The notes under the pieces were generated by a model. It had not been told where the DNA came from and did no database searches. It saw only the letters and a program-made list of their open reading frames with translations. The position numbers were made by a program, and so were the translations under genes. Source: Vitrella brassicaformis CCMP3155 (taxonomy: Eukaryota > Protista > Chromerida). Taken from it: a DNA stretch of 64,000 nt. Where the stretch lies: contig CDMY01000040.1 in NCBI GenBank assembly GCA_001179505.1, positions 62,001-126,000 of the forward strand. Reading direction: 5' to 3'. Shown here piece by piece: positions 1-14,930 of the stretch (positions are counted from its first letter, which is position 1; each line of letters starts with the position of its first letter).

Positions 1-1418
1 ACACTCATCATCATCAGCAAAATCTCCACAAACCTCCGCGTCACTTCCGCGTCGACCGACGGATGCACGAGGGCGTATGCGTGCTGCGCGGTGAAGTTAT
101 CCCTCTCCAGTGCGAACAGGACGTCCTCCGGCACTCCTGGCAGCGGCTCCTGCTTGGGCGGCACCACAATGCTCGGCGCAGGGAGGGGAGGTTTGGGGGG
201 CCGGGGAGGGAGGGGGTGAGCTGATGCCGGCCGAGATACAGAGGCAGCGACGGCCGGCTGGACGGCTTCGGCGTCCAAGAACCCCTGGGAGAGAGACATG
301 AGCGGAGGAATCGTCACCCCGATCGGCCTGTCGGCCTCTCGCGATTCGCCCTGAACAGTTATTGTTGGCATCTCTGGCGATGCAAAGCCGCTGGCACCAT
401 AATAGGGCGCGAAAGCTGGCGGGGCGCCGCCGGCGGCCGGTGGAGGGGGTGGGGTCTTCTGCAGCTGTCTTTGCAGCGCAAAGATGGTGCGGTGGTGCTT
501 CTCATTGATGTACAGCACACAGGCCAGCAGAAGGAAAACGAAGACCACCAGAATCGCCCACTCCTGCGCAACAACACCTAATTCTCCTCACAGAGTCTCC
601 TGCCTGCCTGCCTGCCTGTGTGTAGATGTATACTCGTGTCTCACCAGCCAGAAGTTCCAGTCACTCAGCTGCGTGGGCCCTGTGGAGCCCTCCAAGAGGG
701 CGACAAAGAGGAACCCCGGCAGGCTGGCCAGGAGAGGCACATAGAAGGCTACGCCATAGAAGGACGCCAGGATGCCGATATAGATAAGAAAGAAAGGCAG
801 CAGCGTGCTCGAGTGGGGGATGAGCGGCACGCCGTCAAAATTGCAATCGACCTCCACTGTCCTTTCCACGGGCGCAGTCGCGAGACACGTCACAGTCTCT
901 CTGCAGAAGTCATCGTGCTTTAGGCCGAGCATCAGCGCCACCAGCCTGTCGCAAGATATGGGCCACACGATGAGAAGAGCGCAGAAGTACGGCAGCATCG
1001 GCACCCGCTCGAGCGCCTTTGGCGGAAGAATGGGATAGATGCCGCCCAGAATGACAAGGAAAGCCTGAACGCCGATCTGAATGCCGAACAGGGTGTCTCC
1101 CAGATTGTCGGTGTCCTCCTCTTTGTTGCCGTATAGCATCCATGACCGCATAATGAACAAGCCCATCTGCACAAACAGTGCGGCCACGCCGATGCGGAAG
1201 GCCCGCGTCGAGGGGTCCAACCGCGCCCTCTGCTCCCTCCAGAAAGCCTTCTCGAGCTCCTTGTCCTCGAACCGCATCAGAAACAACTGCTTGGGCATCA
1301 TGGCAGCCAACGCAGTACTCGTCGTCTCTGCCGGTTTGGCTGCGGCCTCCAGGTCAATGCCGTCTGGTGGCGGGGCAGTGGGCGTCTGCTGGGGAGAGCT
1401 GCTGAATGGGTTCGCCAT
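1..1418 (-). CDS. Multi-pass membrane protein, 3'-partial (runs off the window start); N-terminal anchor resembles those of membrane adenylyl/guanylyl cyclases and TM-anchored phosphodiesterases
   Basis: Exon 1418-645 (ATG..WNFWL|GTGAG) splices in phase 0 to a CAG acceptor at 563 (EWAILVVFVFLLLACVLYINEKHHRTIF). The frame stays open to position 1. Contains an 'RFEDKELEKAFW' motif before about 6 hydrophobic segments and an E-x3-R-x2-F motif after the last TM, then a Pro-rich linker. No catalytic domain lies inside the window. Confidence 0.5.
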
Positions 1419-1980
1419 GACGCAGCCCTTACGATAACCGGAGTACGTGCTGCGGCAGGTGAACGCCGCAGCCAAACGAGGACGAGACCCAGTGCAGTGC
1501 CATCTTGTGGTGGGGACCGCGAGAAGAGATCGGAAGAAAGACTGGGGGCTTTGGTGGGGCAGCCGTTTCGGGGCAGTTTCGATCGCGTGCGAAAACTCAC
1601 GCCAGCAAGAGGCTCTCAGATACTCTCAAACTGTCGTTGTATGTAAGACACAGACGAGGCACCATACTGCAGCGCGAGACACCAAAGATCTATGCGCCTA
1701 TGACTTACTACTTGGTGAAGAAGCTCAAAAGATCTGAAGAGACGCGGACCGTGTGCAGTACGCCAGCCACACACACAGGCGCACACACCCCACAACAGAC
1801 AAAGCAACCCCGTTGGGCATACATCTATTGCTTGGCTACGCTCACTGTCTGTCTGTCTGTCTGTCTGCCTGTGTGTCAGTGTGTCTGTGTGTCTGTCTCG
1901 CATTGTTGGAGACACTGGATTGCAAACAGCCGGCGGCACTTACTCCTGTCTACCTCTACAGGCCGCCCACGATGCACTAG

Positions 1981-3672
1981 CTAAGTAGCAAGGAACTTGT
2001 TGAGGGGATGGTCAGCCTGCGGGTTGTCATTGGTGACCTTGGGGCTTCTGTCGCTATGCTGCCTCTCCTGCCCGGCGCCCGTCACCCGCACCAGTGCCTG
2101 GAAAACACTCGATGACCTCCGTGCCCCTTGGTCAGGTGACATCACAACCTGCCGGCTTTTCCCTGGTGTTTGGCTGGTCCTGCGGGAAGTGGGGGAGGGA
2201 TCGTTTGGAGCGACTGATGGGACCTTGACCAACCAGCCATCCAACACACGTATTCATTATTTCTACATGTGTCTCCATCCCACCTGAACAGGAATGGGAA
2301 CCGAGGTGCATTGATTTGCCTGGACATCATGCTGGAGCCCTGTCGAGACCCTCGTGGCGATTTGGTCGTCGCCCCGGTCGCCGTCCCCCGCGACGTGGGG
2401 CTCATTGGGGTGACCGCAGGGCTTCTTGACGTGTTGGTCGATCGACGACGGGCCTCGGCGCGAACTGCATTCATACATGGACACAACCAATCGTTGAGTT
2501 GCTGCATGCTTCGTTGGTTGGTTGGCGTAATTACGTCTTTCAGCTCTCCAGTGGCTGGTGGCGTCAAATCCCTCTGGAAGGGCTATCAGCGCCTGGACCA
2601 ATAGAATCAGCACAGGAGGATGGTGGCTGTGATGAGTTTGCGTGTGTAGGCACGCGTGCTCACCCTGCCACCCCTCCGAGAAGGGGTCACATCTCTGACA
2701 CATGACAGAGACACAAGAGATAGAGTGGGCCACAACCCGTCCCTCCATCCCTTTGTTCCTTACTGTCCGGTCGGGCTTAACAGCCCCTCGGAGTCACAAT
2801 GCGCCGCAGTCGCCGATATGGACACCTGTCGCCTCCTGTCGGCCTTACCCGCACTCCCACGGGAGCTGGCACTGCCCTCACCAGACGACTCGCCCTCTGC
2901 ATCTCGCAGGAGAGAGGCTGGCGGTTCGGACAGAGACAGTGGCGCCCGTGGTGGCCCCACTGGAGGGGGCAGATTCTCAGGGGCTGACGGCCTATGACGG
3001 CAGCCACCTTGCTGGGTTGGCGGAGGGGCGTTGGCGGGCTGATGCTGGCTGCTCGTGGGTGGCAAGACGGTCTTCTCAAGTGGTGATGGGACGGCTTTAG
3101 GCTCTGATGAGAGAGTGCCCAATGTTGTAGCGCCAACGGACGCTGGCGACCCGCTGTCTTCCCCAATGGAGCCGGGGAGGAGGAGTGGGCGTGCCTCGGG
3201 GCTGGCATCATCGACGCCGCCATCCTGAATCAAACCAAGACATACACTGGGATGGGTTGTTGTGTCGTGTCCCATCCCACCTCAGCTAAGTTGAATCTGA
3301 ATCCCCTCATGGCCACCGTCCCCGGTTTCCGCCCACCCGCAGCGTCGGGCAGGTCTGGAGGATCGCTGGGCCGTGCCGGCAGGAAGACACCATTCGCGTC
3401 AGGGGCATTGTCACCTTCGTCCTTATCTCGCTCGTCACGCTCGCGTAGGTGCGCTGTCTCCTAGTCAACGACTGCAGGCAGGCAGGGAGGCAGACGACAG
3501 GTGCCTTCATTCTTGGGTTGTCTGTGCGTTGTTTAATGTGGACGGGACCTCATCTCTGGTCCCGATCGATGTGATGCTGCCGGCGCGACTGTTGGACCTC
3601 TTGGAGCCGTGGGGGCTCACTGCTCACACACACACACACACACACACATATTGTCCGACCCTCCGAAGGCAG

Positions 3673-3704
<32 letters not shown>

Positions 3705-6700
3705 GGGCCCACCGAATGGATGTGGTGCGCCCGCTGCTCCACACGGCAGAGCAGATTAGCCACGAGCTCCTGCGTGCATGCGACAGAGATGAGACATACA
3801 TGGTTGGACGTGCTGCCCCGTGCAAATGTATTGATTGTGCGTGTCTTCCGTACCTCTGATGAGTCAACCTTGCGAATGCTGGGTTTGACAACAGCGGCTG
3901 ATGCCCGCCCTTGTGATGCCGAGGACCGCCTCGGCGCGATGCCCTTTGCGACCCCGGGCGGCAAGCCCGCCGAGCTGCTGCGGCTCCTGAAAATCAGACA
4001 GAGAGCAAGCAAGACAACGTATGGGGACGTCCTCGCAATGGATGTCTCTGCGTGTCGCCCATATACTTTGATCGCATGAAGATGCTGTCGCCGTCATCGT
4101 CCATGAAGACGCGAGTGCGCCGATGGTGACGCTGAGAGACATGAGAAATGCATCAGCAAGCAGCAGAGATGCATCGTGGCACGCTCCAGCTCACTCACTT
4201 TGGGCTCTGTGTCGTCCATGTGGTGGTCGTGGTCATCATCGTCGTGGTCGTCAGACCCGAAGCTGCCGCCGCTGCCTCCCTTGGCCACCCGACGCCTACT
4301 GCCCAATTCAGACAGCAGACCCTGGGTGCTGTGAATCGCATTCATCAAATCTACAGCAACCTACACACACATACAGACCATCACGCGCGCACACACACAG
4401 GGTCAGTGTGCATTCGCCGAAAAAGTGGATGAAGTGACTGACTTCTTGCAGCTGGGTCTTGGGGTCGGCTCCCTGCACAGAGAGGGTCTTGCTTAGGGGG
4501 AAGAATGAGTACAGGTGGTGCTCCAGCTGCTCTATCACATACTGCTCGGATCCGGTGAACTCAAGTGGCTCCTTTTGTGCGAGATGGAAGAGCAAGCCAA
4601 TGTATTCCCACAGATCATGTTCCTTGTTCAGATGCACAATAAATCCAGGGCCATATCTGCACACACACAGACAGCACGGCAAACCTTCGTTGAGGGCTTC
4701 TTCTTGCTTCGAGTTGGCCGACCTGTTGATGATTGGCCTGGTGAGTCCGCACACGAGGCACTCATTCTCCAGTGTCTCCATAAAGATGCGATGCTCGTCT
4801 CGTGCCTTGCCCAGCCCGTCAACCAGAAGAGCCAGTATCAGATTCAACATGTACATGTTGATCACCAGAAAAAACGCAAAGTCAAAAAACCACCGGGGGG
4901 GGTTGTTTGGGTCCATTTACATCGAGACACACGCAGACGGCCACACGTATGGCCGTCTCTCGCTCTGTAGCCGTATTAGGTGAGTGACTGACTGACCGGA
5001 AGTAGAAGAGTGCGTCTCTTTCGATGTTTTGCAGCTCGTCCTCATTGCGGTCAAACAGCGACTGCCGCCCGGCGTCGTACCAAATGGGGCGAATCACATC
5101 TGCGATGCCGCCATTGGCTCTGAACCCCATGTTGGCGGTATACAGGAAGACATTCAGCAGAGAATTCCCGTAGTACGTGCCCTGCATCAACACATCATCC
5201 GCACACATGTGGGTGCATGTTGGTGTGGTGTGTTGAGACAGCCCTACCTGCCATGAGCCGGGCCAGATGGACATGGCGCGGTTAAAGAGTACGTAGCCGG
5301 CAGCCGAGAAGACAAAGGCCAACACGACCGACAGGGCGAAGAGGCGGGCAATGACGCCAAGCTTGCCCTTGATCTTCTTGAGAGTCCCATCAAGACCTGC
5401 ACACGCACACAGACACGAGACATCGATGAAGGTGAGGCGCTCAGCCACTCAGGCGCCCACCGGACACGATGATAAATTCCACGAGCGTTATGGACACGAA
5501 TATGGGGTGGAGGATGAGCCCGAACAGACAGAAGATGGCATAGCATAGCCGATACCAGCTGTTCCAATTGTAGAACAGAGAACCTGACAAGCACACACAT
5601 CACACACACACCACAGCGTTGATGGGAGTGATGCCTTGATGAATGGGTGCACGAACTTAGAAAGAAAACGGTGAATGCCAGCTTGTCCCTGCCCTCCGTG
5701 ATGCTGTCGAAATGCCTCACCCACCGATGCAGCCAATAGCTACACACACACACGTGTACATAGTGGCGCTATTGGTCATTCATTCACTCACTGAAAAGAC
5801 GGTCCGCCGTCAGGCAATGGGCCCGTGAAGCTCCTCTTGGCAGCGCTCTGATGTGTCAGGGTGGACATGCTTCGCGCATATCCGAGGGTGGACCTGCTCT
5901 TGTGGAAGTCCTTGCCCCTGGTCTTCGGTGAGCCCTCAGCCACGATGAGCCTTGCCTTCGGCGACACCTCGGTCACATTACGCGACGCCCTCTTCTGAAT
6001 GATCTCGTCTGAACCCAATGGAATCGCCTCTGTTGACAAACTGACACACACATCACACAAGGATATTCGTGGCGCTGTCCCCGCGCTTCCCCCATTCACA
6101 CACCTGTTCATGACGTTCATGGGCAGGTAGTTTGATGTCTCAATGGCGAGCATAATAAGTGCGACCCCCAGGTGAATCCAGCCGGCCGATGTGAAGATGT
6201 AGTCGCCCCACGGGTGTGCCCAATGGAACTCCCAGGTAAAAGACAGCGGTGCTTGCAGCTCCTCCTCTGACATGCAGTAGTAGCAGTCATCTTCGTTGAA
6301 TCTCTCGATGCCCAGGGGCGGGTGGTTCTTGTTGTTGTTGCCAAGCATAAGGAACACAGCCATGATGCTATTCGCTACCTACGTGCATCATCACAACAGG
6401 AATGTGGGCATCTGTACGTATTATGGTGGTCGGCACTCACGAGTGAGAGTCCGAATAGGACACACGAGATGGCGTAGCTGCTGGTCGTGCTGAACCAGCT
6501 GCCCATCCAGCCGATGCGCCACTTGTCCAGCCATGCCTGCCGCTTGGCCACCCATCGGCTGCAGGCAAGGATGGTCATGCCCACGCCCATAATGAGCGTC
6601 AGGTGCCGCCGCTGGCTGCCCAGCTCCAGCTTCTGGAATAAGATCTGGCGGCAGAGATTGGGGTCGAGCGAGAAGAAGTAGATGAGCTCGGGAGGCACAG

Positions 6701-8859
6701 GGAAATACAACACCTCTGCAGGAAGCCACTTGGTGAGTTGCTTATGTGCGCTGTGTCTCTGAGTCTTTTCTCGCTCACCAAGGACACCATTGCGATCGAT
6801 TTCGACTCGTGCGACCTTGAGAACGGCCCGCATCCGTAGGGATGCCCACCTCTCGTTGAGGGAGGTGTTGCGGACCCAAAACATAGACCAGCGCTCCATA
6901 CCACGCAGCGACGGATGGCCGGCTGAAGCATTAATGGGACGGACAGGGAGACAGACACATCGGTGCATCCATGTGCTGCATCTGTTATGTATGTGTGTGT
7001 ACCTACTCGGATGGAAGATGTCCATTGAATCCGCCAGCTGGTAGAGCAAGGCCAGCACCTGACTCGACGCCTCCGCGTCCAACGCCTTGACATTGTCCGC
7101 CATCTCCTGTATGGGTCGTCACAGGCAGACGCCACGGAATTATCTTGTAGTCGACGAAAATGACTGGTCGGCTCACCCGTTCGAGTATTTTGTAGTAGTG
7201 TTCTATGCGTCTGAGAAGCACCTGTTTCTTGAAGTGGAGGATGAACTGCAGAATGCAGTCTTCCTCCTCTGGGCGACCCTAACACAACCGACACCCATCC
7301 TCCCTCCTCTTTTCCCATACATGGCGCTTCAGGCACGTGTACGGACCTTTTCATAAAGCTCGAGCAATGACACAAGGAATGTCAGAATAGACTCTTCCAG
7401 CGACTCCTCGTTGCCGTCTATCTCTCTCTCCTCCTCCAACACAGACTCGGGCAGCTGCTCCAGCAGACGGAACGCCTCCAAATGGAGACCGTACACAAGC
7501 GTCTTCACCTGAGCACACAAACGCGCAAACACCGTGGCACGCACACCCGTATATGACAGCTCCCTTGGCGCTTGTCCGACGACGAGTGGACTACCTGATT
7601 TGCGTAGCAAGGGCCCTGCAGAGTCTCGGTGACGGTGCGGAGGCACCTGTGGATGATCTCTATCTTATTGTTGGCTATGTACTGCTCAGCGTTGATCAAC
7701 ACGGTCCTCACTGTGTCGCACAGCCGGTCCATGATGCCCAGAGGATTCAATGCCCTGCAAAGAATAGACACAGATGCAGAGACTTGATACACCATCCAGT
7801 TCGGTGTCTCATTGGCGTCTCCATTTTCGACCTTTGTGAGATCTTTTGATGGTGCTCACAGAGGGCCTTGACGCAGTTTAGAAAAGCGGCAAGGAATGGC
7901 TGCGACGCGAGACCGCTCACAGACCTGCCATACTCGTCCGTGCCGATGGTGCGGCCCTCTACCTGAGCAATGCGAGACAGCAGCGCACCATGCCGCCCTG
8001 CCGTCTGGTCGACGTCGGATGGCACAAAAAAGTGTATGCACAGCTCGTCGAAATCCATGGGGCTCGTGTCCAGCTGCTGCGAGGCCAAGTCGCCCAATAT
8101 GGTCATAATACAATGCAGCAGTAGACACAGCAGTTTCTCCATGCCCATCAGCCCCTGCTTCACGCCAAAGTTAACGAAGCCCTCCTCGTCCTCTGCTGCT
8201 GGTTCCTCTTCCTGCCGTGTCTGGTTTGTCGCGTCCACGCCGTCGTTGGTGTGGTTGCCCAGGCCGTCGTCTTCCTCATCTTTCAAATACACCTCCTCCA
8301 ACTGGTCAATCACCCGCTCCCCAATCATCCGCAGCGCCTCTGTGAAGCGGACATAACCGATGAAGGCGATCGATGGCGGCAGGTTGAGACGAAAGGCAGA
8401 TGGCGGCGGCGTCTCCACACACCGCCGAAGCAGCGTCCCAATGGCGTTCTCGCTCGTGCCGGTCAGGGCCATCGTGCCTCGCCGTGGGGGTGCAGGCACG
8501 CCTGTGTCGTGGAACACGGGACTCTCGAACACGTTCCTCTCCGAGAGAAGGGTCATGATCTCCTGCAGCCTCGTAGATAGCATATGCAGAGAGTTGTAGT
8601 CGAGTGCTGTGGGGAATGGCGGGACGGAGCGAGCGAATTCCTGAATCCATCGGATCTCCTCCTCAATCTCGTCCTCCCACGCCAGCACGAATGCGCTGTG
8701 CCGCTTGTGCTCGCCGCTGCCCTCCCCTCCAGGTAACACCGACGGCAGCCCGAACCAGGTATCACGGATGGTCGTGGTTGTGCGAGAGCGGAAGGTGACG
8801 CCTGGCCTCTGATCATAGGAGTGCCCCCGCCTGGGCGGCGACCTGAAGTCCTCCTGCAT
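1981..8859 (-). CDS. IP3 receptor / ryanodine receptor-family Ca2+-release channel-like protein (RIH-associated domain + ion-transport domain + C-terminal CxxC..H..H region), multi-exon; 5' start and 3' tail exons approximate
   Basis: Ordered family motifs on the minus strand: FLNCVKALCEHHQ (cf. FLQLLCENHN); TVTETLQGPCYANQ (~7597-7630; cf. LTEYxQGPCxENQ); VEIDRNG..EVLYFPVP (cf. IEIVR..IVFPVP); several TM exons; pore GFRANGGIAD (5098-5127); WFFDFAFFLVINMYMLNLILALLVDGLGKARDE (TM6); ECLVCG..HLNKEHDLWEY..FTGSEQYV..FFP (cf. CFICG..H..EHNMWHY..YTGPESYV..WFP). Introns are GT-AG with microsatellites. Confidence 0.85.
3625..3704. repeat. Adjacent (CA)12 and interrupted (TC)n microsatellites, representative of the many intronic microsatellites in the window
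   Basis: Read directly from the sequence. Confidence 0.9.
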
Positions 8860-9698
8860 CCTCCTCCTGCAGTCTGCTTCTCAAAACACCCGCATGAGTG
8901 AGACGGACGGAGCGGGGAGGGGTCGAGTGAAGGATGTACGCCTCCCGTCAATTGCCTCCCCTCGAAGCGCCGACCCGATGTTGTATGTTGTCCTGATTCC
9001 TCACAATCTCACTCCTTCGGTGGGGGCAAGTGGGGGTGTGAGACGCCATCATAATGCAAACCGCTGCAGACATATGGATCTTTGCGAAGGTCGAGATCCT
9101 CTGGCGGGGTTCCAATTAGTCTATCCATGTGCACCCTCCACGCAGCCATCCATTCCATCCATCCATGCACACCAGCTGCACACTATGCGGACAGACACAA
9201 ACGGAACAGGGGAAAAAGAAGGCAGGTCCACCCGTGCAGTCAGTCCATCCATCCATCCATCCAGAAACAACACAGCACCGCCGCGCAGCCACAGCCACAG
9301 CCACACGCACGTATCAACACACCGTCCAAACAGCCAGGGTAAAGCCGCCAACATGATTTTTCCATCACGGTGCTTGTGAGTGCATCTGGCCCTTCATTTC
9401 TTTACCGTTGCGTCGCCGAGCCAATGCAGCACAAGGAAGAAGACCCTTCCTTGTTTGTGCTGCACTGAGCAGGCCGACGCAACGGTAAAGAAATGAACAG
9501 CCGACGGCGGCAACAAGCAAGACGAGCAGACTCTCACTACTCGACAGCCAGACAAACAAACCCATCCATCCATCCATCCATCCAATGCGTCCGACCCCGC
9601 CCACCGCAGGCTCATCCAAACGCTACCTAGCTTCACGTATCAACAAGCAAGGAAGTATGCCCACTCCCGTCCCCTTCTATCAGCCCTTCTATCGGCAT

Positions 9699-10796
9699 CT
9701 ATGCGCCTCTGTACTTGATGACCTCCACCTTGTCCACAAACTCCTCGCTGCAGAATTTGGCGAAGGCCTCGTGTGCGAGCAAGAGACTCTGCGCCTCTTC
9801 GCTGCCCAGGTTCACCATCAGCACCACCGTCGGGATCACGTGCCCCTTGTACACCTCCCAGACGGTGTTGTCCGGGATCACACCCGCCGGCCAGATCTTG
9901 TCCTTGAGCGACCCGAGGGCCATGAGCGTCTCGGGGCATCGGAACTCCTTGGGTGTGACGCGGATCACCGTCAGGAACGACGTGCCGCCCTGGGCCTGAT
10001 GAGGCACGGCGGCCGCCGCCACGCCCTGGGTGCCCTCGCCACGCACACGCCCGTACGTCATGACCGGCAGGGCACCTGGCATGCCACCTGAAGACACACG
10101 ACACACGCACAAGGGCAACAGATAGTCAGGTCAGATGTATCGATGTCTGCACGTCGGTGTGCGCTTACCGGGATACATCGGAACTGGAACCATATAGCCA
10201 CCGCTGCCAGTCGAGTAGCCGCTGAGCCCCTACACCAGCAAAGATATCCAGAGACCACAAGATCAACAAGGTCAGGTCCGCGCATGTGTCGACAAAAAGA
10301 CGATCTGATCTCCTGCCTTTGTAGGGTGTGCATTCGCGTACCAGAGGGCTTCCAGTGCTCCCAACCATCGGCATAACCATGGGCATCTGCACGTATGGAG
10401 CAGGCATGGCTGCCCCGCCCGCCGTGCCGTACCCTGCTACGGTATATCCTCCAGTGGTGGTATAGGTGGCGCTACCGCTATTGCCACCTGTGGGGTAGGT
10501 GGGGTAGGTGCCTCCAGTGGCGTCGGGCGCGTTCGGACCAGCCTGCACAGTGGTCGAAGCTGGAGCAGCGGCGGCGGTCGCAGTGGTGGTCGGAGTGGCC
10601 ATGGGCACGGCAGTCGCCACGGTGGCCGGCACGGTAGTCGGTACCGAACCTGAAAGAGCGCCACAGAGGTGATGAAATGCACAGGGATGCATGCTCTCGT
10701 ATTGTAGGCATGTTGTGTTGCGTGCGGCTTCTCACCCATGTACATGGCAGGATACCCGCCCGCCGTGGGGTAGGCCGAAACGCCGTACGAATACAT
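9699..10796 (-). CDS. Hypothetical protein, 4 exons; Tyr/Gly/Ala/Thr/Pro-rich low-complexity N-terminus plus a ~120-aa globular-looking C-terminal domain
   Basis: Exons 10796-10736, 10649-10342, a short exon (GLSGYSTGSGGYMVPVPMYP) and a final exon ending KYRGA-TAG join with GT-AG sites; phases were checked at the first and last junctions. No family recognised. Confidence 0.7.
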
Positions 10797-10913
10797 ATCG
10801 CCAACAAGTCTACCAACAACGCCCAGGCTCTTAGGGCTGAGTGAAACACAACTCAGCTGTGTAAACCACCAAGCAACGCGGAGTTCATTCATTCAAATCT
10901 GCCTAATCTCACG

Positions 10914-12883: not shown

Positions 12884-13929
12884 TCATGATGCAGCTGATG
12901 CAATGATCCTCTCCACCTCCGCCGGCCAATCGAAACGAAGGGTCCCTCCGAGTGAGGGTGGCACGCTGTCTTTCCTCACAAACAGCCAGAAAGGCTCGTC
13001 GGATTGGTTGTCGTCTGGAGAATCAGTTTTGACAAAGTGCACCCGGTCCCTGATCTTCTTTGCGAGCAGCCCAAGCACGAAGTGGACGATGCTGCTGATG
13101 ACGGGGGAAGCCCGCAACACATACACACGCCGCAGCTTGCAGGGGAAGCTCTCCTTCCACATCATGACGCCTCTCTTGATGTCCGCCAGAGTGAAGTGGC
13201 GCAGCAGCCCCAATGTGATGCCGCCCACGTCGAACACGAGAGCGACGCCGTGCTGATGGCAGGCCGGATCATCCGTAAGCAGCTCCATCAGAAAGCAACC
13301 TGAAGAAAACGCACAGCAACGCAATGCAGACAGGCGAGGAAACACACACACAGCCATTGCAATAATGCATTGCCCGGCTGCTCATGCGTCCACTTACCCA
13401 TCTTCTGAAGGCTTTCGATGGAGATGCGCTGCTGGGGAGTGATGCGAGCGTTGATGCTGTCCAGTACCTTCCCGTTATACACGAGCATCGGCCGGCCATC
13501 AATGTCCCTGACGCATACCAAAGGAGACCAGACCAGATAGACCGACGGCATGTGTCTGCAATGGATTGCAGTGGTGCTCCTCCCCTCCGCATGTACCTTG
13601 TCGGTCATGTACCTTGTCGGTAGGATCCAGTGCAGCCCGCTGAGTAGAGCCGCCTTGACGTCCTCAGTGCACTCGATGCGATACGGCCACCCAGCTGAGT
13701 CGCGAAAGCGTGAGAAGTTCCGGGCCACAGTGGCGGCTTCTTGCTGGTGCCAGTCGCGGCACATCAGACACTTGCGCAGGAAGGAATCGGAGAGCACCAG
13801 CGGCTCCAGTTCAGCAGCAAGCTGGGCCACCCGTTGCTGCGCCTCATCTTCGTCTTTCGGTGGAATGGCGGCCTCCTTTGTCCTTGACGTGAGTGCGCTT
13901 TGCAGATAGTCCACAACGTCCTTCAGCAT
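12884..13929 (-). CDS. CRAL-TRIO (Sec14/alpha-tocopherol-transfer-like) lipid-binding protein
   Basis: CRAL-TRIO-N-like SDSFLRKCLMCRDWHQQEAA..FSRFR; RDIDGRPMLVY; GVALVFDVGGITL..ESFPCKLRRVYVL..LLAKKIRDRVHFV..VPPSLGG, all typical of the fold. Three exons. Confidence 0.85.
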
Positions 13930-14930
13930 TGCTTCACACAAAAAAATGGGATGAAAGAAAAACTTGATTCACGCGTCTGTACAGATGCCAGTGTGGCTCA
14001 CCTCGTTCCAAAGCATCTCCCGCGTGCGAGATCTTCCTCTTCCTCACTGTGCGAGCTCAAATGCCAAGCTCGCAGTGAGGATTTCTCCAGCTGGAGTTGA
14101 ATTCAGGGCGTTGAAGACCGCCCTTTAGCCTGTCGGCATGGGAAGTGGCTGCCTAGCCTCCCCATGAGCTTCAGACGTGCATCTGTTTTGTCGAATCCTG
14201 AGAAGCCCCGCTGACGAGGCCCTCGCTGTCCGGGGGTCTGTGAGGCAGCGCTTGGAGGACGTGCATTGGACGGTGGCGACGAGACGCCGTGTCTCTCTCG
14301 TGCGCTTCGTGAGAGACGTTGCGCGTTGACGGTTGGTGGCTGCCCGGCACTCGCGACCTTCGGCGCATCGCTGGGAGGACGGCAACGCCTCCCTTTGGCC
14401 GGTGTCAGACGGCGGGAGAGGCCCTCTTCGCTGCGTGATCGGTGAGCAGATGCACGAAGGGAGGGATGCATGCATTGCGTGGTTGAGGTTGTCGTGTGGG
14501 TGCTGCACGGCCGTGTGGATGTGGTGTGGTGGTTGTTGAAGAGGTGCCTTGATGGATGGATGCTGTATTGGCTGTTTGGGTCTCTGTGCGTGTGTGAGGT
14601 TGCAGGCAGTATAGAGATCTTTGTTGAGAACCCGAGAACCTCACAAGGAGCTGGCAACAAGCGGCTTCAGACAGCGGTGAGTGGCCGATCGGCTGCTCGT
14701 GTGGTGTGCGCATGCCCTCTGTTCATTTTGGGTGTGTTGGTGTCTATTGTGTGCAGATCTGTCGGACACGAGTCTCCCTGCCAGAGATCCCGTAGCGCAT
14801 CGCATTCTCCGATCAGTCATCAGGTATGCGAACCTCCCCGCTCAAGCCAACATGCACCGCCTCTTGTCGAAATGCATCCCTCCATTCGCTTCTGTGTTGT
14901 TCTCTCAGATCGCTTAGGTTTTGTCCCACC

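Follow-up and report, generated by a model that had tools for sequence, protein, structure and literature searches.

The 64,000-nucleotide stretch analysed here (the window; contig CDMY01000040.1, positions 62,001 to 126,000) contains, on its minus strand, a nuclear gene of Vitrella brassicaformis which is a short member of the ryanodine receptor/inositol 1,4,5-trisphosphate receptor (RyR/IP3R) superfamily (TC 1.A.3). An earlier note, made from the sequence alone, had read positions 1981-8859 as a Ca2+-release channel of the IP3R/RyR family and had tied its interest to the host being a chromerid; the source of the DNA is indeed the chromerid Vitrella brassicaformis CCMP3155. The short form consists of an ARM3-like region, a channel domain, a linker and a tail, and the label of IP3 receptor is unsupported. 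The gene is transcribed and spliced, and its reading frame is broken between the pore and S6, in the DNA and in the RNA alike. This break is most likely a recent insertion that disabled the gene while transcription continued. The reading that we prefer, to which we give about an even chance, is that of a young pseudogene, i.e. a short superfamily member which would be gated by Ca2+ if intact and which has recently been disabled but is still expressed.

The RNA evidence consisted of assembled contigs only: two cDNA contigs of the Joint Genome Institute (JGI; L001 and L002) and the Logan contigs of four runs over positions 3300-9299. In the spliced RNA, the first open reading frame (ORF1) extends over 1049 codons from the ATG at 8859 and is continuous across 12 introns; the 1049-residue protein encoded by the main mRNA ends ahead of the pore-lining helix. 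The second frame (ORF2) opens after a TAA (4919-4917), has an ATG at 4916 and overlaps ORF1 by 32 nt. A 169-nt segment (5049-4881), comprising 163 nt and the second TTTGAC of a 6-nt direct repeat, occupies exactly the S6 start. As 169 is not divisible by 3, the segment shifts S6, the linker and the tail into the +1 frame with respect to the pore. The genome and all the RNA contigs contain it, and it is 100% identical in those of JGI and of runs X6 and X7. Exon 13 (5181-4723) is contiguous and unspliced in L001, L002, X6 and X7, and no splice placing the pore and S6 in one frame was found in the four runs and the two cDNA contigs. The JGI cDNA is not a copy of the genome data, because the two differ by a 13-nt indel (described below), and the same 169 nt are present in it nonetheless. 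An intact gene, as implied by the earlier note, is not borne out: the pore and S6 lie in different frames of the mature RNA, which had escaped that note.

The position of the segment was compared with the family by means of a profile hidden Markov model (HMM) of 2506 match states, built from 40 full-length relatives and run on window positions 1-22000. The HMM matches on either side of the segment end at 2257 and begin at 2262, respectively, and in the genome profile search the ORF1 and ORF2 pieces overlap by 12 model positions. In a MAFFT alignment (A1), GRQSLFD of ORF1 and PRWFFD of ORF2 occupy the same family columns. In the 108 homologs having both motifs (of 142 with CxxC), 59-75 residues (mode 64) separate the selectivity filter from CxxC; in the Vitrella gene this distance is 61 without the 169 nt and about 117 if the segment is read through. 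Intron 4442-4361 and the segment have a similar GTCAGTCA start. The ORF1 stop stands in the context GTT TTT TGA C, a possible +1 slippery site, with Pro-Pro-Pro just before it. The fold of the 191-nt region around the segment gives z = -2.1 against shuffles. Within the segment, at 4935-4958 (minus strand), lies a perfect hairpin with an 8-bp stem, GACGGCCA TACGTG TGGCCGTC. Two accounts of the segment were considered and rejected. Canonical splicing across the break finds no AG in 4916-4880, and no GT-AG, GC-AG or AT-AC pair restores the frame. A mobile-element origin meets a single-copy sequence (no second copy of the 163-nt insert was found in the genome) which has no terminal inverted repeats.

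The DNA of the window is GC-rich, intron-bearing and eukaryotic in character. All searches were run exon by exon, and exons were joined only for following the reading frame. The four motif blocks claimed in the earlier note (RIH-associated motif, pre-transmembrane motif, pore/S6 block and zinc-finger tail) are all present, in canonical order, on the minus strand, as found with Pfam, phmmer against PDB and the family profile, and every landmark named there sits in stop-free pieces from about 9.0 to 4.4 kb. The Pfam search that it proposed for RIH_assoc (PF08454) gave 31.2 bits on exon 2 alone, above the cut-off of 28.5, and 30.8 bits in a six-frame search of the genome. The piece 4916-4311 matched IP3R1 (6mu1) at 4.4e-12, as well as IP3R2 and IP3R3, and RyR1-3 at 2e-10 to 1e-9; this IP3R1/RyR tail match comes as two blocks, split by an intron inside the zinc finger which was confirmed by the cDNA. 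In window 1-22000 the family-profile matches were on the minus strand only and all colinear: RIH_assoc (hmm 1780-1819), S3/S4 (2139-2173), S5 to pore (2197-2257), S6 (2262-2324) and linker/tail (2321-2397). S5, the pore helix and the filter were matched with an independent E-value (i-E) of 3e-8. The filter, GGIAD, is a variant found in 2 surveyed homologs, GG[IVLM]AD occurring in 7. In S6, in the CxxC..H..H zinc-finger linker and in TGxExYV, all near-invariant family columns are retained. Ion_trans (PF00520) was detected on the S6 exon only, at 14.4 bits for a cut-off of 25, in an exon-by-exon search of a domain spread over seven exons. The pre-transmembrane motif resembles 'IEIVRLDRTMEQIVFPVP', which we take to be the sequence of IP3R1. 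Membership of the superfamily, as the earlier note had it, is supported by RIH_assoc, the IP3R1/RyR tail matches and the colinear profile matches.

The N-terminal half of an IP3 receptor is another matter. About 370 residues precede RIH_assoc, and the product would consist of these unrecognised, helical residues, the ARM3-type RIH_assoc region, a channel domain of six helices with the GGIAD filter, and the zinc-finger linker and tail. No IP3-binding, MIR, RIH or SPRY region was found at the gene with Pfam on the exons and with the family profile, whose positions 1-1780 had no match anywhere in window 1-22000. Exon 1 had no match in Pfam, PDB, the family profile or the ESM Atlas, and its single-sequence AlphaFold model (predicted local distance difference test, pLDDT, of 37) was unusable. 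In the genome of Vitrella brassicaformis CCMP3155 (72,700,666 bases in 1064 contigs), Ins145_P3_rec (PF08709) and RYDR_ITPR (PF01365) gave no six-frame match, in an exon-wise search that had no positive control and that did not include MIR. The transcript 5' end and the stop upstream of the ATG leave no room for an N-terminal ligand-binding region. An IP3 receptor in the strict sense, with N-terminal suppressor, IP3-binding core, MIR and RYDR_ITPR, was therefore not found; nor was a strict RyR, as SPRY, RyR repeats and N-terminal RIH gave no Pfam match and the protein is far too short. This divergent copy has no ligand-binding half and should not be annotated as an IP3 receptor; the claim of an IP3R proper is unsupported, its IP3-binding core, MIR and RIH domain not having been found.

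The contigs provide the RNA confirmation of the gene model that the earlier note had recommended: a spliced, transcribed gene with its ATG at 8859, which is also the start given there. Its end at 1981 was too generous; channel homology stops near 4440. Within the contig-covered stretch the transcript has 18 GT-AG introns of 52-92 nt, and every joint refines to GT..AG. Introns 3712-3621 and 3280-3225 appeared at first to be non-GT-AG and were canonical on inspection, and intron 7594-7509 was picked among three equal-length candidates on splice-site quality. L001 and L002 are 100% identical to window 5185-1607 minus the introns. Run X6 yielded a single spliced RNA contig of 5471 nt (record 17) that starts at 9022, is unspliced down to 7832 and has a depth of 89.5; matching pieces were found in X7 and X1. 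The 5' boundary of the gene is firm because the transcript starts at 9022, an in-frame TGA lies upstream of the ATG and a separate upstream transcript ends near 9055. The features, in the direction of transcription, are as follows.

8860-9022, minus strand: 5' untranslated region (UTR), with an in-frame TGA at 8883-8881, seven codons ahead of the ATG; from the X6 contig.
7832-8859, minus strand: exon 1, 342 codons, N-terminal region without recognisable domain; from ORF and phase; predicted all-helical at low confidence.
7595-7754, minus strand: exon 2, core of RIH_assoc (..VTETLQGPCYANQ); Pfam 31.2 bits; aligned to 6dqj_A 1901-1958.
7508-7347, 7278-7177 and 7106-7007, minus strand: exons 3-5, helical region from RIH_assoc to the pre-transmembrane motif; GT..AG joints.
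6693-6806, minus strand, split by intron 6778-6716: pre-transmembrane motif VEIDRNGVL / EVLYFPVP; exon-wise translation.
5248-6602, minus strand: exons 7-12, S1-S5 with the cytosolic S2-S3 loop; hydropathy peaks, profile matches at S3/S4 and S5, six GT..AG joints.
5050-5181, minus strand: first part of exon 13, with pore helix, GGIAD filter (5112-5098) and ..GRQSLFD, the latter aligned with the S6 start of the family; profile hmm 2224-2257, MAFFT and genome profile search.
4881-5049, minus strand: extra 169-nt segment in exon 13; cDNA and RNA contigs; no counterpart in the family profile.
4881-4890, minus strand: end of ORF1, GTT TTT TGA C, stop at 4884-4882; sequence reading and ORF map of the spliced RNA.
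4723-4895, minus strand: S6 (RWFFDFAFFLVINMYMLNLILALLVDGLG; 4895-4809) and CLVC half of the zinc finger (4760-4749); IP3R1/RyR matches; hmm 2262-2324, i-E 2.7e-14.
4443-4656, minus strand: exon 14, H..EH half of the zinc finger (4634-4617), TGSEQYV (4556-4536) and FFP; IP3R1 2628-2697; hmm 2321-2397, i-E 2.3e-23.
4360-4199, 4131-4067, 3986-3854, 3769-3713, 3620-3549 and 3471-3281, minus strand: low-complexity tail exons of ORF2; cDNA and RNA contigs.
1607-3306, minus strand: continuation of the transcript past ORF2; GT..AG introns, a third ORF and cassette exon 2694-2664.

ORF2 stops at 3309-3307 on the genome and at 3552-3550 in the JGI cDNA. The latter lacks 13 nt (GGCATCGCGCCGA) in exon 3986-3854 (L001:900-1045) which are kept by the genome and by X1, X6 and X7; the indel shifts the frame of the C-terminal tail, giving 293 amino acids (aa) in the cDNA versus 353 codons in the genomic sequence. 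A strain difference could account for it, or else it could be an artefact flanked by AGG repeats.

As to function, Glu386 (7627-7625) aligned with E1946 of human IP3R3 (6dqj_A), in VTETLQGPC versus LTEYCQGPC. The RyR1 counterpart of this residue is presumably E3967. In IP3R3, E1946 coordinates Ca2+ and its charge is needed for Ca2+ activation (PMC9522344). At the end of exon 1, 'ALCEHHQ' is similar by eye to the motif of a second sensor glutamate, ..LCE(N/G)HN.. (IP3R3 E1882 / RyR1 E3893). If intact, the gene would encode a tetrameric store channel that responds to cytosolic Ca2+ by opening (Ca2+-induced Ca2+ release) and does not open to IP3. A Ca2+-gated store channel is our best inference for the intact protein, because one sensor glutamate and the TGxExYV linker are kept whereas every ligand-binding module is absent. 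It can be likened to a RyR-like channel of Paramecium without InsP3-binding domain, activated by caffeine and 4-chloro-m-cresol (4-CmC; PMC3213138).

In the young-pseudogene reading, the insertion at the S6 start would have disabled the gene, and transcription and splicing would persist. The 13-nt indel in the coding tail, between the JGI cDNA and the genome and other runs, is a sign of relaxed constraint. The reading is further backed by a precedent in the same superfamily, as Paramecium CRC-III-1b is described as a transcribed pseudogene with insertion-derived nonsense transcripts and normally spliced flanking introns (PMC3213138). Several observations weigh on the other side. ORF2 keeps every near-invariant residue (the Phe and Asp of S6, C, C, H, H, Y and FFP) and stays open for 293-353 codons over five or six correctly spliced introns; given this conservation, the break must be very recent unless translation of ORF2 continues. 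A near-ideal +1 slippery context surrounds the stop of ORF1, and contigs drop rare variants, so that a minor or stage-specific processed RNA is possible. A depth of 89.5 in X6 would not be expected with more than 10 exon junctions past the stop, if nonsense-mediated decay (NMD) acts as in animals. For the Ca2+-gating part of the reading, neither phmmer nor the profile aligned ALCEHHQ with the second sensor glutamate (E1882 equivalent).

The other explanations differ in whether the break exists in the functional RNA. It would not if some of the RNA lost the segment through an unconventional or stage-specific process, in zoospores for example, which we regard as unlikely. If the 169 nt were cut out between the TTTGAC repeats, both the frame and the spacing would be restored (61 residues; ..RQSLFD/FAFF..). 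Removal of a 76-nt intron GT(4992)..AA(4917), which has a weak acceptor, would restore the frame too (..FYFRS/MDPNN..), and this candidate has an intron-like length, a GTCAGTCA start as in intron 4442-4361 and a GT-rich end. In X1 and X5 the Logan contigs are interrupted at 4902 and 4915, perhaps because the assembly graph branches there. However, exon 13 shows no joint in the four runs and the two JGI contigs, in which the other introns are spliced out, every ascertained intron of the transcript is GT..AG, and no protein of 161-513 aa with an insert-free junction was found in a collection of 5.8 billion proteins. The break would not exist either if the gene were an intact divergent IP3 receptor, as the earlier note implied, and if the interruption were an assembly or base-calling slip in a C8 or T6 run. 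A change of one base in C8 (4902-4895) or T6 (4889-4884) joins the frames, and all data are short-read. This is nevertheless very improbable: the C8 and T6 runs have the same lengths in the genome assembly as in three RNA assemblies, the JGI cDNA, with its indel elsewhere, is not a mere copy of the genome data, the 56-residue insert would stay even with the frames joined, and no IP3-binding region was found in the gene or in the six-frame genome search.

If the break is real and lies in the functional RNA, it could be bridged by the ribosome. A programmed +1 frameshift at GUU UUU UGA C would give a full-length channel of about 1400 residues: with the weak stop UGA-C in the A site, Phe-tRNA would move from its UUU onto the overlapping one, and the luminal side would gain an additional loop of 56 residues ahead of S6 (junction ..PPPVVF/DFAFF..), the truncated ORF1 product being made by default. 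E. coli prfB (CUU UGA C) and antizyme (UCC UGA U) are +1 frameshift sites. The likeness to them consists of a slippery codon followed by UGA and a +1 shift, here with UUU UGA C, and is a resemblance in sequence. The shift needed is exactly +1 and falls inside the 32-nt frame overlap, the site has the form X-XXU-UGA-C with three prolines before it, ORF2 is fully conserved, and VVFDFAFF fits the family S6 start (R-v-l-f-D-l-s-F-F) as well as the ORF2 frame does. On the other hand, no orthologue was found that would show conservation of the slippery site, the 56 extra residues look non-coding (a GT-rich stretch encodes ..AVCVCLD.., and the GTCAGTCA start is intron-like), the loop is nearly doubled relative to the 59-75 residues of the measured homologs, a run of 56 open codons arises by chance with a probability of about 0.1-0.15 in this GC-rich DNA (our own estimate), and there is no conspicuous 3' stimulatory structure (fold z of only -2.1). 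We hold this frameshift to be unlikely as well. There is a slim chance that the break is functional in a stronger sense, the UUU-UGA-C frameshift, maybe promoted by a Pro-Pro-Pro stall, choosing between the complete channel and a pore-less sensor fragment of 1049 residues; if true, this would make the gene the first case of recoding in an ion channel of the apicomplexan/chromerid lineage. Finally, termination-reinitiation could yield two polypeptides that form a split channel, one from ORF1 (sensor to pore loop) and the other from ORF2, starting at ATG 4916 (S6 to tail). The ATG of ORF2 directly follows its upstream stop and lies 32 nt before the ORF1 stop, but the contigs showed no short transcript that begins around 4916 (for L001 and L002 the start is in exon 12) and, to our knowledge, reinitiation after an ORF of 1049 codons is not known for cellular eukaryotic mRNAs; this arrangement is extremely unlikely. 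Between recoding and pseudogenisation, the interrupted S6 with its RF2-like stop context offers a tidy and cheap test case in a culturable alga.

The gene was then compared with its relatives. A search of 1.84 billion proteins with the tail gave 2737 matches at E<=0.001. The best non-self matches are 33-42% identical over the most conserved 140 residues, the closest reaching 42%, and the named ones (Salpingoeca, Hartaetosiga, Diplonema, chytrids, Thecamonas, Rigifila and Platysulcus) are scattered across eukaryotes. The top matches also include one sequence of a Colpodella/Colponema transcriptome, which may come from prey. Exon-wise phmmer against the top 153 matches showed no relative outside the conserved core, the only alignable block being of about 180 residues, and the ESM Atlas yielded only generic Ion_trans fragments for the tail. 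With IP3R1 (6mu1) and IP3R3 (6dqj) the Vitrella gene shares RIH_assoc with the E1946 glutamate, FPVP, S5/pore/filter, S6, the C2H2 linker and TGxExYV. It differs from the metazoan IP3R by having no beta-trefoil/IP3-binding core, ARM1 or ARM2, by its frame broken before S6, by its filter (GGIAD instead of GGVGD) and by the length ahead of RIH_assoc (about 370 residues versus about 1900 in animal IP3R). To RyR1-3 it is similar in the S6/linker/tail match (2e-10 to 1e-9) and probably in gating by Ca2+ alone, whereas it has no SPRY, RyR-repeat, RIH or MIR region and is about a quarter of the size of a RyR.

Among alveolates, the RyR/IP3R superfamily includes the Paramecium tetraurelia Ca2+-release channels (CRC) CRC-I to CRC-VI (Ladenburger and Plattner 2011, PMC3213138). 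They have six C-terminal transmembrane helices, and several groups are described as having no recognisable InsP3-binding domain, as in the Vitrella gene. Their pore-to-TM6 loop is described as elusive or shortened in groups III and V, whereas that of Vitrella is lengthened. A Paramecium CRC has 2021 aa, compared with about 1050 aa for ORF1 or about 1350-1400 aa if the two frames were bridged. No specific sequence affinity to the Paramecium channels was observed, and the named best matches of the Vitrella tail are not ciliates.

The rest of the Vitrella genome contains only one other RIH_assoc/S6-linker locus, on contig C897 (132000-150999, plus strand; locus at about 132-147.4 kb). It is a long form, which covers family-profile positions of about 820-2427 with RIH_assoc at 31.1 bits, and it is 32% identical to the window gene in the linker. 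No recognisable IP3-binding core was found in it with Pfam and the family profile. Its pore and S6 are in one frame, but a 9-column deletion in the pore coincides exactly with the GGxGD filter (YGFRS---------APLW).

Apicomplexans release Ca2+ in response to IP3 and cyclic ADP-ribose (cADPR) and have no IP3R/RyR gene, a statement of the earlier note which the literature backs (PMC3194816, PMC9799330). No link of Vitrella or Chromera to IP3R was found in the literature searched. The gene described here is a new, divergent member of a known channel family in the chromerid lineage. With two members in Vitrella, the family survives on the chromerid side of the split and, Vitrella being the closest photosynthetic relative, the loss postdates the chromerid split or had already begun by then. 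The classical store channels may have been in the course of being lost in the lineage before parasitism arose, as neither Vitrella copy is canonical, one having an interrupted S6 and no ligand half and the other no filter. The gene is useful for dating the loss, as the earlier note had expected of it. As a bridge for sequence searches it is a weak seed, since its best matches are at 33-42% identity and scattered, the named ones not being alveolates, and the window copy gives little leverage for finding a cryptic apicomplexan channel.

Beyond the ORF2 stop, about 1.3 kb more of spliced RNA, without channel homology, continues down to 1607. It contains an ORF in a third frame (L002:1314-2162) of 282 aa, rich in S, P and R and without Pfam match, and a cassette exon (2694-2664) that is included in L002 and skipped in L001. 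The region 1607-3306 could be a second gene merged by the assembly, an intron-rich 3' UTR or a further decayed coding region. Directly downstream of the transcript end at 1607 lies a 345-codon open frame (591-1625, minus strand) with several hydrophobic stretches and no Pfam match. On the other side, the transcript of the same-strand upstream neighbour (9055-10900, minus strand) ends near 9055, about 33 nt before the start of the channel transcript. This neighbour, whose ORF at 10130-9702 has no Pfam match, is covered several-fold deeper in the RNA contigs. Further upstream, a CRAL_TRIO (Sec14-like) lipid-transfer gene was identified at 12887-13968 on the minus strand (PF00650, 2.7e-11).

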